Shown one piece after another: positions 36,579-61,235 of a stretch of DNA of 64,000 nucleotides (positions are counted from its first letter, which is position 1; each line of letters begins with the position of its first letter). The stretch is taken from contig NIVC01000232.1 in the NCBI GenBank assembly GCA_002269645.1, positions 257,684 through 321,683 of the forward strand. The letters are read 5' to 3'. Source of the DNA: Macrostomum lignano. Lineage: Eukaryota. The notes under the pieces are model-generated. The model saw only the letters and a program-made list of their open reading frames with translations. It ran no database searches and had not been told where the DNA came from. The position numbers were made by a program, and so were the translations under genes.

Positions 36579-38235
36579 GATAGATAGATAGATAGATAGA
36601 TAGATAGATAGATAGATAGATAGATAGATAGATAGATAGATAGATAGATAGATAGATAGATAGAGAGATAGATAGATAGAGAGATAGATAGAGAGATAGA
36701 TAGAAAGATAGAGAGATAGAGAGATAGAGAGATAGATAGATAGATAAATAGATAGATAGATAGATAGATAGATAGATAGATAGATAGATAGATAGATAGA
36801 TAGATAGATAGATAGATAGATAGATAGATAGATAGATAGATAGATAGATAGATAGATAGATAGAGAGATAGATAGATAGATAGATAGATAGATAGAGAGA
36901 TAGAGAGATAGAGAGATAGATAGATAGATAAATAGATAGATAGATAGATAGATAGATAGATAGATAGATAGATAGATAGATAGATAGATAGATAGATAGA
37001 TAGATAGATAGATAGATAGATAGATACATAGATAGATAGATAGATAGATAGATAGATAGATAGATAGAGAGATAGATAGATAGATAGATAGAGAGATAGA
37101 TAGAGAGATAGATAGATAGATAGATAGATAGATAGATAGATAGATAGATAGATAGATAGATAGATAGATAGATAGATAGATAGATAGATAGATAGATAGA
37201 TAGATAGATAGATAGATAGATAGATAGATAGATAGATAGATAGATAGATAGATAGATAGATAGATAGATAGATAGATAGATAGATAGATAGATAGATAGA
37301 TAGATAGATAGATAGATAGATAGATAGATAGATAGATAGATAGATAGATAGATAGATAGATAGATAGATAGATAGATAGATAGATAGATAGATAGATAGA
37401 TAGATAGATAGATAGATAGATAGATAGATAGAGAGATAGATAGATAGATAGATAGAGAGATAGATAGAGAGATAGATAGATAGATAGATAGATAGATAGA
37501 TAGATAGACGAATAGATAGATAGATAGATAGATAGATAGATAGATAGATAGATAGATAGATAGATAGATAGATAGATAGATAGATAGATAGATAGATAGA
37601 TAGATAGATAGATAGATAGATAGATAGATAGATAGATAGATAGATAGATAGATAGATAGATAGATAGATAGATAGATAGATAGATAGATAGATAGATAGA
37701 TAGATAGATAGATAGATAGATAGATAGATAGATAGATAGATAGATAGATAGATAGATAGATAGATAGATAGATAGATAGATAGATAGATAGATAGATAGA
37801 TAGATAGATAGATAGATAGATAGATAGATAGATAGATAGATAGATAGATAGAGATAGATAGATAGATAGATAGATAGATAGATAGATAGATAGATAGATA
37901 GATAGATAGATAGATAGATAGATAGATAGATAGATAGATAGATAGATAGACGAATAGATAGATAGATAGATAGATAGATAGATAGATAGATAGATAGATA
38001 GATACATAGATAGATAGATAGATAGATAGATAGATAGATAGATAGATAGATAGATAGATAGATAGATAGATAGATAGATAGATAGATAGATAGATAGATA
38101 GATAGATAGATAGATAGATAGATAGATAGATAGATAGATAGATAGATAGATAGATAGATAGATAGATAGATAGATAGATAGATAGATAGATAGATAGATA
38201 GATAGATAGATAGATAGATAGATAGAGAGATAGAT
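36579..38235. repeat. (GATA)n array 1
   Basis: ~1.66 kb with scattered GAGA/GACGAA variants. Confidence 0.99.
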
Positions 38236-41200
38236 GTGGGCAGACAAGATTCAGCCATCGATCTCGCAGCTGGTCATCAAGGCTGAGGTCAATATTACGT
38301 GCAGAAAATTATCCCATTAATATAAATACTATTATGGAACTCATCAATATCGATGTTGGCCATCTCCATGGCAACAATTAATTCAAGCTTGAATCGCCGT
38401 GCATAGCCAGTGATAGAAGATCCGTCTGTATTTTTCTATCAATAGCTTGATATCCATATTTCTGCTTTCGCCTAAAAAGGAAGCCACGCAGCCCTGTTGC
38501 GTGTGGGAGTCCAGCTTAGGGGTTTGCCGCGTGATTGATCGGCTTGAAGAGGCGGAGAGACGGGATCTGGGTAGCGGGGAGGGGGAGCAGAGCTGAGAGC
38601 AAATTTTCCCATGGTTAATAAGCTGGGAGAATTCTACAATGCAGCTCAGAAGTCACGTCTAAACTGGTTTGATTAACAAAACATTTCTGACCAGCATCTT
38701 TAGAAACAATGCTGTGCCGCTAAAGACAGGTAAAGCTGCATCATTAGCCTGGAGTCTGTGAGGGCGCATTGCATTAGTTCTAGCTAAGATTTCATGGCAA
38801 TATTGACATTTTTTGCTTTTAAGAATCCTGAATAGAAAAGCAGAGTGGTTCACCTAGAAAATATTTACCTCTGTAGTGTCCAAATATTAATATTAAGAAA
38901 ATTTTGAAGAAGAGAATCTCATATTGCAAAATCTAAAAATCTCCAGAATCTTATTCTATAGAATCTCACCCTAAAGAATCTCACCCTACAGAATCTCACC
39001 CTATTTAATCTTACCCTATTTAATCTCAGCCTACAGAATCTCACCTTACAGAATCTCACCCTACAGAATCTCACCCAACAGAATCTCACCCTACAGAATG
39101 TTATCCTGCAGAATCTCACCCTATAGAATCTCACCCTACAGAATCTCACCCTACAGAGTCTCACCCTACAGATTCTCACCCTACAGAATCTCGCCCTACA
39201 GAATCTTACCCTGCAGAATCTCACTCTAAAGAATCTCACCCTACAAAATATTTTCCTAGAGAATCTCACCCTAAAGAATCTTATCCTACAGATTCTCACC
39301 CTACAGAATCTAAACCTAAAGAATCTCACCCTCCAGAATTTTACTCTAGAATCTCACCCTACAAAATCTCACTCTACAGAGTCTCACCCTACAGAATGTT
39401 ATCCTGCAGAATCTCACCCTATAGAATCTCACCCTACAGAATCTCACCCTACAGAATCTCACCCTACAGAATCTTACCCTACAGAATCTCACCCTACAGA
39501 ATGTTATCCTGCAGAATCTCACCCTAAAGAATCCCACCCTACAAAATCTTTTCCTAGAGAATCTCACCCTAAAGAATCTTATCCTACAGATTCTCACCCT
39601 ACAGAATCTAAACCTAAAGAATCTCACCCTCCAGAATTTTACCCTACAGAATCTCACCCTACAGAATCTCACCCTACAGAATCTCACCCTACAGAATCTC
39701 ACCTTACAAAATCCACTCTACAGAATCTCACCCTACAGAATCTCACCCTACAGAATCTCACCCTACAGAATCTCACCTTACAAAATCTCACTCTACAGAG
39801 TCTCACCCTACAGAATCTTCCCCTTCAGAATCTCACCCTACAGAATCTTACCCTCCAGAATCTCACCCTACAGAATTTTACTCTAGAATCTCACCCTACA
39901 GAATCTCACCCTACAGAATCTCACCCTACAAAATCTCACTCTACAGAGTCTCACCCTACAGAATGTTATCCTGCAGAATCTCACCCTACAGAATCTCACC
40001 CTACAGAATCTTCCCCTTCAGAATCTCACCCTACAGAATCTAACTCTACAGAATCTCATACTACAGAGTCTCACCCTACAGATAAGCAGAAAGGGTTGCT
40101 TTTATTGCTTTGCAGCCTCGATCGCTTCAAACACAGAAAGTAGTCCAATTTCGTTAAAATCCTATTTTATCTGCTCAATGTTAAATTATTCAAAAAATTT
40201 GCAAACGATTTCGGTCGATTGAATCTGACAGATTAAGCCCGCTGGAGTAGAATCCGGTTTCCACGATTGTAAACGGGAAGGGAAGTAAATAACAAATATC
40301 TTACAGCAAGTTTAAACTGACTAGCTAAATTTAAAACTTTAGTCAACAAGTTTGCGTTTTGCAAGTTAAATAAATATCCGTAAATGACCTGACAAACAGG
40401 CTGCACAGACACATCTGACAGACAGACTGTACAGACACACCTGACTGAAAGACAGACTGTACAGACACATCTGACAGACAGACGGTACAGACACACCTGA
40501 CTGACAGACAGACTGTACAGATACACCTGACAGACAGACAGGCTGTACAGACACACCTGACAGACAGACAGACTGTACAGACACACCTGACTGAAAGACA
40601 GACTGTACAGACACATCTGACAGACAGACGGTACAGACACACCTGACTGACAGACAGACTGTACAGATACACCTGACAGACAGACAGACTGTACAGACAC
40701 ACCTGACAGACAGACAGGCTGTACAGACACACCTGACAGACAGACAGGCTGTACAGACACACCTGACTGAAAGACAGACTGTACAGACACATCTGACAGA
40801 CAGACGGTACAGACACACCTGACTGACAGACAGACTGTACAGATACACCTGACAGACAGACAGGCTGTACAGACACACCTGACAGACAGGCTGTACAGAC
40901 ACACCTGACAGACAGGCTGTACAGACACACCTGACAGACAGGCTGTACAGACACACCTGACAGACAGGCTGTACAGACACACCTGACAGACAGGCTGTAC
41001 AGACACACCTGACAGACAGACAGACTGTACAGACACACCTAACAAACAGGCTTTACAGACACATCTGACCTGACAGACAGCCTCTACAGAAAGTTAATAC
41101 GCGTTTATAAATTAATCTGCTAAAAGAAGATATAAAAAAACGCAAAAGCTACAATGCATGCAATGGCAGAAATGCTTACCTTAAACCAAACACAATATTC

Positions 41201-60300: not shown

Positions 60301-60885
60301 TTAGCGCCACATGATAAATTTTAGCGCCAATTTAGAGCCACAGAATAGAGTTTTGGCGCCAAATTGGCGCTAACTACGAGTCAATTTAAATTTTTACTTT
60401 TCCTGCCTAAAACTAAATCATAATTTTTGTTAGAAGTTCATAGGCTTTGCTTCAAGATTTATTCTACTAGAAGACTCTTTAGTTTGAAGTTTTACGTGTC
60501 AAAGCAGGATACTGAAGGCTCGTGATTAAAGTATAGTAAATTAGACTCGCAGTAGTTCTACTTTACAATACAAATGTAATGAACATACAAGGTACACACA
60601 AATATAAGTATTAGAGTATTTAAAGAGGGCCTGGATTTTGTTCCACAAGTGTCAATCAAAGTGGAAATTTCTGTTGACATTGTTTCAGAATGCAATTCTG
60701 ACAAGCCATCATTGCAAGGGGCTCTCATACTTCGGCTGCTATACTGCTAGTCTATACTCTAAACACCGTGAATTGCATGGCTGCTCAGACAACTCGCCAA
60801 TTTGGATACTTAATACATGGATGGATGCAAACACAGACAGAACTTATAAGTTTTTAACAAATTCAGATTCAACTAACAGCCAACT
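57380..60885. repeat. Composite macrosatellite unit, copy 3 (3506 bp), diverged, with shorter internal arrays
   Basis: Same termini and unique segments, with many substitutions and small indels; all three internal arrays differ in length or variant content. Confidence 0.95.
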
Positions 60886-61235
60886 GACAGATAGATAGAT
60901 AGATAGATAGATAGATAGATAGATAGATAGACAGATAGATAGATAGATAAATAGATAGATAGATAGATAGATAGATAGATAGATAGATAGATAGATAGAT
61001 AGATAGATAGATAGATAGATAGATAGATAGACAGATAGATAGATAGATAGATAGTTAGATAGATAGATAGATAGATAGATAGATATATAGATAGATAGAT
61101 AGATAGATAGATAGATAGATAGATAGATAGATAGATAGATAGTTAGATAGATAGATAGATAGATAGATAGATATATAGATAGATAGATAGATAGATAGAT
61201 AGATAGATAGATAGATAGATAGATAGATAAATAGA
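60886..61235. repeat. (GATA)n array 5
   Basis: ~350 bp, more degenerate. Confidence 0.97.

Follow-up and report, generated by a model that had tools for sequence, protein, structure and literature searches.

Tandem duplications that arise by non-allelic homologous recombination (NAHR) are marked by an alternative state in which a single-copy segment lies between repeats of the same orientation, and by a duplicated state with full-length copies placed head to tail, every junction inside a repeat, and a spacer that carries signatures of the flanking arrays. Macrosatellites and higher-order repeats are multi-kilobase units with internal sub-repeats in tandem, polymorphic in copy number between individuals or lines, with inner copies that are homogenised and pure and edge arrays that are degenerate. 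Young satellites form when an insert is amplified locally, starting from short direct repeats at its flanks or from rolling-circle copies, and the banded krait minor (Bkm) satellite combines long (GATA)n tracts, interspersed GATA and GACA, and an association with sex chromosomes. Finally, false duplications (PMC9516828) are near-identical tandem copies produced by unphased assembly of polyploid genomes and by joins across low-information repeats; they are of heterotype or homotype, and their signs are gaps between the duplicates, identity of the duplicate to another haplotype, and a read depth that is halved or low. Here, we describe a locus of the flatworm Macrostomum lignano, inbred line DV1, that can be compared with each of these, in which a composite unit (U1, U2 and U3) is repeated in tandem between (GATA)n arrays (G1 to G5). 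It lies on contig NIVC01000232.1 (contig 232) of assembly Mlig_3_7 (GCA_002269645.1; PMC5730564, PMC10733133), in a stretch of 64,000 nucleotides that was analysed as a whole and is called the window (record coordinate = window position + 257,683).

The locus works like a classical duplication of the NAHR type; it is a new example of a known process, and an unusually informative one because the unduplicated state is found in the same genome. It has full-length head-to-tail copies, junctions in a repeat and spacers whose signatures loosely fit the flanking arrays, and the single-copy segment between same-orientation repeats is present as the alternative state on two further contigs, NIVC01000105.1 (contig 105; locus L007) and NIVC01000284.1 (contig 284; locus L009). 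Unlike in known cases, the flanking repeats are not Alu elements, long interspersed nuclear elements (LINEs) or low-copy repeats, but kilobase-long pure tetranucleotide microsatellites, which leaves the register of exchange free and the length of the spacer arbitrary. A further difference is that the first duplication would have joined two diverged alleles. The product resembles a very small macrosatellite, with a tandem unit of about 7.4 kb made of microsatellite, three minisatellites and unique DNA, and with homogenised, pure inner copies and degenerate edge arrays; however, it has three units only, no gene or known transcript, and a copy number that differs between the subgenomes of one animal. 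With somewhat better than even likelihood, in our judgement, the locus is a noncoding intergenic tandem duplication driven by exchange between GATA arrays, with a single unit as the basic state and a 261-bp insert that was amplified later. As an instance of a simple repeat driving a larger duplication, it is a clear but ordinary case.

GATA arrays were mapped with Tandem Repeats Finder (TRF) and a regular-expression scan, and their patterns are written as run lengths of perfect GATA, [n], between variant units. Five (GATA)n arrays were found, all of them on the plus strand, and no TATC array occurred in the window (Table 1). TRF gave a period of 7378–7406 bp for U1/U2. The sequence-only reading had described a composite unit of 3.5–4.6 kb in three copies, with all junctions in GATA, in the order GATA1-U1-GATA2-U2-GATA3-[273-mer]x15-GATA4-U3-GATA5. 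The three copies (4588, 4559 and 3509 bp), the order and the arrays proved to be real in the assembled sequence. Likewise, because U1, U2 and U3 are full-length and have identical first and last bases, each abutting GATA, the breakpoints of the duplication lie in GATA. The treatment of GATA3 and GATA4 as two arrays did not stand, as judged by the pattern of interruptions. G2 reads [21] GAAA [4] GACGAATA [3] GACA [96] GACA [2] GACA [3] GACA [6] GACA [559], G3 reads [21] GAAA [4] GACGAATA [3] GACA [352] up to the 273-bp array, and G4, which includes the internal signature of G2, reads [80] GACA [2] GACA [3] GACA [272]. Since the 5′ and the internal signature of G2 are both present, G3 and G4 are a single array homologous to G2 and split by the 273-bp repeat. 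The latter, first read as a separate block between two arrays, is instead an insertion that was amplified inside one spacer array. The true architecture is G1-[U-GATA]x3.

In order to compare the locus with its counterparts, the neighbouring glutathione S-transferase (GST) gene served as an anchor: the 207-aa protein is encoded identically on contigs 232, 105 and 284. On contigs 105 and 284, a 24-mer array, the left flank, a left GATA array, one U, a right GATA array, the right flank, a 14-mer array and the GST gene follow each other in this order; the flank sequences match those of the window, and both GATA arrays are on the same strand. The left arrays are degenerate and measure 1.63 kb on contig 105 and 2.09 kb on contig 284, the right arrays about 220 and 320 bp in the same order (216–320 bp), and the single U segment 4.4–5.0 kb. 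The copy number of U is 3, 1 and 1 on contigs 232, 105 and 284, respectively. According to record coordinates, 43,505 bp separate the ubiquitin from the GST gene in the window, as compared with 24,488 bp on contig 105 and 24,763 bp on contig 284; the surplus of 18.7–19.0 kb in the window matches the distance of 19,144 bp from the start of U1 to the start of U3. The link between window and contig is given by the tri-ubiquitin locus of NIVC01000232.1, which is 100% identical to window positions 16417–23106. Outside the locus, to its left as well as to its right, the unique sequence of the three contigs is pairwise 1–3% apart. Because this fits the divergence reported for the three subgenomes of DV1 (S, L1 and L2), which is 1.9–2.4% by single-nucleotide polymorphisms (SNPs) and about 36% when indels are counted (PMC10733133), we regard the contigs as the three subgenomes. 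The earlier proposal that GATA serves as the substrate of recombination or slippage is supported, with a single GATA-U-GATA as the alternative state on contigs 105 and 284. In a check for units without GATA flanks, which would have spoken against this proposal, all known copies, five units on three contigs, had GATA on both sides.

The units themselves fall into diverged types. End-to-end alignment of U1 and U2 showed one substitution, three 1-bp indels in G/C homopolymers and one 30-bp indel, a deletion of two 15-mers in the 15-mer array of U2 relative to U1. Between U3 and U1, the identity was 94.5–98.4% across the four unique segments, and the 15-mer and 63/31-mer arrays of U3 were shorter. 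Over 2.2 kb of unique sequence, U1 and U2 differed at one site (0.04%) and every other pair by 1.8–2.5% (U1 and U3, 2.5%; U1 and the contig 284 unit, 1.8%; U3 and the contig 105 unit, 1.8%; the two contig units, 2.4%). U3 was also considered as a slightly older daughter of U1/U2; this was rejected, since it is as far from them (2.5%) as from the contig copies (1.8–2.2%) and since it shares variants with the latter in a mosaic. Each of the four lineages (U1/2, U3 and the units of contigs 105 and 284) carries 13–15 private substitutions, 15 in the case of U1/2 and 15 in that of U3. In the 5′ half, 8 sites group U1/2 with contig 105 against U3 with contig 284, whereas in the 3′ half 16 sites group U1/2 with contig 284 against U3 with contig 105; only 4 informative sites group the units of the window together. 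DV1 has been reported to have three homozygous subgenomes, and the presence of four U lineages therefore means that one subgenome holds at least two units. By these site patterns, the window holds two old allelic classes in tandem. Each 5′ class is found with each 3′ class, which requires recombination in the past of the locus or else a switch of haplotypes in the assembly. The first duplication would have joined two haplotypes that were already different, or it would date to the genome doubling.

The minisatellites repeat this pattern. Three different ones are found in all units, as the sequence-only reading had stated, and its estimate of about five 63-mer copies in U1/U2 and about one in U3 was about right. 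In U1, U2 and U3, the 15-mer array measures 1139, 1110 and 421 bp, the 26/30-mer array 702, 702 and 715 bp, and the 63/31-mer array 505, 505 and 118 bp. The further idea that these lengths vary independently had to be given up: in a comparison of U1–U3 with the units of contigs 105 and 284, each half-unit has two old length classes that were reshuffled by recombination. In particular, the 15-mer array is 1110–1181 bp long in U1, U2 and contig 105 versus 378–421 bp in U3 and contig 284, and the 63/31-mer array is 505–528 bp long in U1, U2 and contig 284 versus exactly 118 bp in U3 and contig 105. In the Mlig_3_7 assembly, 15% of the M. lignano genome consists of simple and tandem repeats. Tandem repeats account for 55% of the window, and because they occupy 44.6% of the sequence outside the locus and 51% of U1, the presence of three minisatellites per unit is the local norm and nothing special to the unit. 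By BLAST, the unique segments of the unit had no match elsewhere in the window except for ACAG-rich minisatellite similarity. A long ACAG-rich 24-mer array at 3447–5236 is about 75% similar to the 30-mer array of the unit. An exact 29-mer of the unit was not found in metagenome contigs.

Further traces of exchange are visible in the variants within the GATA arrays. The run-length pattern of G1 is almost that of the left array of contig 105, and both are of GAGA type (16 and 21 GAGA units, respectively) and free of GACA, while the left array of contig 284 is of GACA/CATA type. The three right arrays have in common the signature GACA...GTTA [7] TATA. The internal arrays G2, G3 and G4 contain GACA-type variants only, as found in the right arrays and in the left array of contig 284, with no GAGA, and are 99% pure. 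These internal spacers fit, if loosely, the start of a right array followed by the left array of a U3-type haplotype, and not a copy of G1. The fit is loose in that G2 and G4 finish with [559] and [272] uninterrupted GATA units and so lack the CATA [12-54] that leads into the unit in each of the three outer-left arrays. A composition of G2 from the 5′ part of G3/G4 and the 3′ part of G1, with a visible G1 signature, was rejected because the CATA [54] end is missing from G2; any such breakpoint must hence lie within the last pure run. A variant with three substitutions, GACGAATA, is found twice in the 3′ third of G1 and once each at the starts of G2 (42824–42960) and G3 (50202–50340), but in none of the GATA arrays of contigs 105 and 284. 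This sharing is a hint of additional exchange between arrays within the window.

From these data, the following history can be proposed. The basic state would be one U with a long (GATA)n array to its left and a short one, oriented alike, to its right. A first event may have been an unequal homologous exchange, in which the right array of one chromosome recombined with the left array of a homologue that had another allele. It would have placed diverged units of the U1/2 and U3 types in tandem, separated by a hybrid GATA spacer, and an exchange between different alleles would leave unit types as diverged as the subgenomes are. A second, very recent event between G1 and the spacer, be it unequal exchange of sister chromatids or slippage during replication, could then have given rise to U1/U2. 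With its two breakpoints again in GATA, it would have copied the first unit along with the greater part of the spacer, which would account for the near identity of U1 and U2 and for the signatures common to G2 and G3+G4. Later, slippage presumably changed the lengths of the pure spacers (96 versus 432 units between two signatures), and a 261-bp piece may have landed in one spacer and been amplified to about 15 copies via a 12-nt GATA linker.

The direction of change could conceivably be the reverse, with loss elsewhere in place of gain here, and this has to be weighed against the proposed history. In this alternative, an array of two or more units is ancestral and predates the split of the subgenomes, two of which were cut back to one unit by unequal crossing-over. 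The divergence of 2.5% between U1/2 and U3 does equal that between subgenomes. Moreover, contig 105, whose left array resembles G1 and whose right array resembles G5, carries a unit of U1/2 class in its 5′ part (long 15-mer array, 8 sites) and of U3 class in its 3′ part (118-bp 31-mer array, 16 sites), exactly the hybrid expected from a crossover deletion between unit 1 and unit 3. However, the unit of contig 284 is the opposite hybrid (5′ U3-type, 3′ U1/2-type) and no simple deletion product, so that two independent and different losses would be needed. Furthermore, contigs 105 and 284 carry these opposite hybrids even though they are each other's closest relatives in the right flank, and the 5′ segment of U1 is still 1.4% away from contig 105. 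We therefore regard loss from a larger ancestral array as distinctly unlikely.

A more serious challenge to duplication by GATA exchange comes from the assembly itself, and several observations weigh on this side. Mlig_3_7 was built with Canu 1.4 from PacBio continuous long reads (CLR) of a neopolyploid genome and polished with Pilon. Over-represented paralogues are common in it, and most of its four-copy blocks have only threefold read coverage (PMC10733133). The differences between U1 and U2 are mostly of the kind left by consensus errors (three of the five are homopolymer indels, next to one substitution and one repeat-unit indel), and the four-gamete mosaic of the units could have arisen where the assembler switched haplotypes within long arrays. 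Thus, the locus could be an artefact in whole or in part: each subgenome would have one or two real units, and Canu would have chained the extra ones through the kilobase-long GATA arrays, where noisy CLR overlaps carry no haplotype information. U1/U2 would then be a homotype false duplication, one of the classes described in PMC9516828, and the identity of the 273-bp copies a product of consensus and polishing.

The relatedness of the window to contig 105 bears on the same question. The left flank (36165–36577) is 100% identical to that of contig 105, and contig 284 has 8 private differences in these 413 bp. Over the 1704 bp left of G1 (34874–36577), the window and contig 105 are of equal length even across the 24-mer array and differ at 4 sites (0.23%), none of them in the last 1268 bp; in the unit they are 2.2% apart, which places the switch inside G1. 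The assignment of the whole left part of the contig to the contig 105 haplotype was rejected, as the two differ by 1.1–1.9% at 10–28 kb further left. The near-identity block that ends within G1 is either a real conversion or crossover tract at the microsatellite or a phase switch of the assembler.

Several features speak against an artefact. As in false duplications, the copies are near-identical and in tandem, in an unphased assembly of a polyploid, with joins in low-information repeats; here, however, they are joined without gaps (zero N gaps in the window), and the diverged copy matches no haplotype assembled elsewhere. All three subgenomes are already present on separate contigs on both flanks, and because U3 and U1/2 carry 15 private substitutions each, neither is a reuse of the haplotype of another contig. 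The contexts of the junctions are also distinct: G1 leads into U1 through CATA [54] and G2 into U2 through [559] pure units, and between the same signatures there are 96 units in G2 and 432 units plus the 273-bp array in G3/G4. The right arrays found elsewhere (216–320 bp) are too short for spurious overlaps of long reads, and U1 and U2 are both clean rather than error-rich in the manner of low-coverage sequence. An artefact is thus plausible for U1/U2 and for the perfect 273-mers, but less plausible for the tandem of U1/2 and U3, and as an account of the locus we consider it unlikely, though not lightly dismissed. Since the assembly was made by Canu on CLR reads of a neopolyploid genome with Pilon polishing, the U1/U2 pair and the exact lengths of the arrays hold as assembled only; this region of the reference should be flagged as one in which copy number, array lengths and haplotype phase are not to be trusted without long-read validation.

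Returning to duplication by GATA exchange, the 273-bp array is specific to one spacer and probably a later, local event. In agreement with the earlier count of 15, it has 15 full copies, 100% identical and at an exact spacing of 273 bp, plus a partial 16th cut at position 90. The monomer (51739–52011) consists of a 261-bp core and a 12-nt GATA-derived linker, GATAGTAGATAG. It is not CpG-depleted, with an observed/expected CpG ratio of 1.09 and a GC content of 50.5% versus 0.63 and 42% in the window, and it contains two CCAAT motifs and, near its start, a perfect 10-bp hairpin stem. No frame is open through the whole unit, the longest open reading frame (ORF) being 79 aa. With young satellites arising from locally amplified inserts, the array shares identical monomers, a 12-nt remnant of the host microsatellite in each of them and an end at an arbitrary phase; it differs in that neither a donor of the core nor transposable-element features were found, and the identity of its copies is possibly inflated by polishing. 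A rolling-circle intermediate would explain the identical copies and the arbitrary end phase equally well as amplification based on the linker.

Searches with the 273-mer gave no relatives. It is absent from the loci on contigs 105 and 284, and BLAST returned no match in the rest of the window or in three other M. lignano loci (about 62 kb). There was no Rfam match, either at the gathering threshold over the whole window or at E ≤ 1 on the array, and no match in a tRNA scan. Neither the six-frame translation nor the 79-aa ORF had a homologue in a set of 5.8 billion proteins. Nothing was found in plasmids, exact 28- to 37-mers gave nothing in viral and metagenome contigs, and a scan for bacterial promoters and terminators, irrelevant for a eukaryote, was empty. 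A cluster of spliced-leader RNA genes was rejected, as what we take to be the M. lignano spliced-leader sequence does not lie within the unit.

Two further explanations concern the nature of the unit and of the arrays. Non-LTR (long terminal repeat) retrotransposons that target microsatellites exist, and the unit might accordingly be a mobile element, or a passenger of one, that inserted into GATA arrays three separate times. The identical termini of all five known copies, abutting GATA on both sides, would suit such an element. On the other hand, the unit has no Pfam-matching ORF, terminal repeats were not found, and ordinary minisatellite makes up half of it; at the loci compared, the other copies are all syntenic, with the same flanks and neighbour genes, and the GATA signatures beside the units were duplicated along with them. 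Membership of a transposable-element family was rejected on the same grounds (no Pfam-bearing ORF, and only syntenic copies among the loci compared), and insertion is in our view the least probable of the explanations, with next to no likelihood.

The second possibility is that the GATA arrays are functional enhancer-blocking boundaries and that selection keeps the insulated domains. The statement in the sequence-only reading that GATA arrays have been reported as enhancer blockers has a source: GATA repeats blocked enhancer-promoter interaction in vivo according to Kumar et al. (2013), as that work is cited in PMC5622345. In all three subgenomes, the GST gene is bracketed by GATA arrays. Nevertheless, the subgenomes differ widely in array length (0.2–2.8 kb) and also in the number of presumed domains, and since the unit has no annotated gene, Pfam-bearing ORF or Rfam match, there is nothing evident in it to insulate. 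We consider a boundary function very improbable. Lastly, the long (GATA)n arrays with scattered GACA variants recall Bkm, from which they differ in that GACA occurs as 1–5 single variant units per array; with GACA present only as rare point variants and not as blocks, the locus was not assigned to Bkm. M. lignano is a hermaphrodite without sex chromosomes, to which a sex-chromosome association does not apply.

Table 1. Features of the GATA-flanked tandem duplication and its flanks (window coordinates).
Feature	Position	Strand	Description
Unique left flank	36165-36577		Ends ...GGAATTATATGCA before G1; found likewise in front of the left GATA array of contigs 105 and 284
G1, outer-left (GATA)n array	36578-38235	+	411 units, 93.9% pure, GAGA-type variants; CATA [54] end before U1
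U1	38236-42823	+	4588 bp
U1 unique segments	38236-38943, 40083-40388, 41091-41804, 42310-42823	+	
U1 minisatellites	15-mer 38944-40082; 30-mer 40389-41090; 63-mer 41805-42309	+	
G2, internal spacer array	42824-45642	+	702 units, 98.9% pure
U2	45643-50201	+	4559 bp
G3, 5′ half of second internal spacer	50202-51738	+	Same 5′ signature as G2
273-bp tandem array	51739-55923	+	15 full copies and a 90-bp partial 16th
G4, 3′ half of second internal spacer	55924-57379 (55926-57379 by TRF and regular-expression scan)	+	
U3	57380-60888	+	3509 bp, 15 private substitutions
U3 minisatellites	15-mer 58088-58508; 26/30-mer 58812-59526; 31-mer 60253-60370	+	31-mer array 118 bp
G5, outer-right (GATA)n array	60889-61236	+	87 units, 89.7% pure; GACA/GTTA/TATA signature common to the right arrays of contigs 105 and 284
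Unique right flank	61237-61590		Begins GATTGCAAACTGTAGG; followed by a 14-mer array (61591-62790), then the GST gene
GST gene, 3′ part	63611-64000, to window-equivalent 64234	-	Single-exon, sigma-type, 207 aa; anchor for the other two locus copies

The locus is intergenic, between a G-protein-coupled receptor (GPCR) gene and the GST gene, and the unit has no Pfam-matching ORF, no Rfam match and no gene call in the public record. The genes of the window comprise ammonium-transporter exons, a mucin-like gene, a PAN-domain ORF, a tri-ubiquitin gene, a tRNA-Arg, an FMRFamide-receptor-like GPCR and the 3′ part of the GST gene. In each of the three subgenomes, a further GATA array (1.64, 1.67 and 0.2 kb), inverted, is located upstream of the GST gene, just outside the window (window-equivalent 64684–66327, L008 7908–9551; L007 7884–9551; L009 9348–9551), so that the gene is bracketed by GATA arrays of opposite orientation. 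The GPCR gene (24834–26228, minus strand) has a single exon and encodes a rhodopsin-family protein of 464 aa, with best matches of 42% in a nemertean, an annelid and a crustacean; no matching product is on record for the contig, and the gene appears to be unannotated.

Repeats are also found within and around other genes of the window. The introns between the ammonium-transporter exons (1167–3373, minus strand) are filled with a 15-mer array (1692–2315) and an (ACAG)n array (2751–3012). In the mucin-like gene (11839–15165, minus strand), a minisatellite of 30/60/90 bp (12593–14746) is coding: the 1108-aa ORF has decapeptide repeats of the GEKSDTAKAS type and a C-terminal hydrophobic segment. 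Its annotated products have 1014 aa in the window and 947 aa on contig 105, which indicates that the number of repeats differs between subgenomes. The polyubiquitin gene (19417–20106, minus strand) has three ubiquitin units in 690 bp, in the window as on contig 105 (L020 10001–10690), while on contig 284 (L019 10001–10918) it measures 918 bp, the length of four units plus a final codon and a stop; the gene models on contigs 105 and 284 give a 153-aa product. The hexamer GGCGCC occurs 197 times in the window versus 3.6 expected, in at least four unrelated-looking minisatellite families (17-mer, 21-mer, 24-mer and 63-mer), at 5613–6196, 20577–21158, 28248–28389, 30900–32655, 34531–36164 and 41805–42309 and at the U2/U3 equivalents of the last. 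The 17-mer array has two inverted occurrences, about 14 kb apart, that flank the mucin-like, PAN and ubiquitin genes.

A broader proposal would be that kilobase-long pure GATA arrays in M. lignano are hotspots of homologous and homeologous exchange that routinely make multi-kilobase tandem duplications, reshuffle haplotype blocks at their borders and nurse satellites such as the 273-mer, and that they are a main source of the divergence between the three subgenomes of about 36% by indels versus about 2% by SNPs. The relatedness of the window contig to contigs 105 and 284 changes at G1, within the 30-mer array and at G5, and if the proposal were true, these changes would be footprints of exchange and not of the assembler. 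We put it forward tentatively, as possible but doubtful.

With regard to its biology, nothing indicates a function of the unit or of the arrays, and the structure is most readily understood as a by-product of microsatellites that are prone to recombination. Should reads confirm it, the locus would provide a before-and-after pair for microsatellite-mediated segmental duplication in one genome (one versus three units), and the sequence of events could be worked out from the 13–15 private SNPs per lineage together with the array signatures. It shows by example that subgenomes may differ massively by indels while their small-scale identity is about 98% (PMC10733133), and it is best seen as exemplifying the origin of the large indel differences among the three subgenomes of M. 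lignano.

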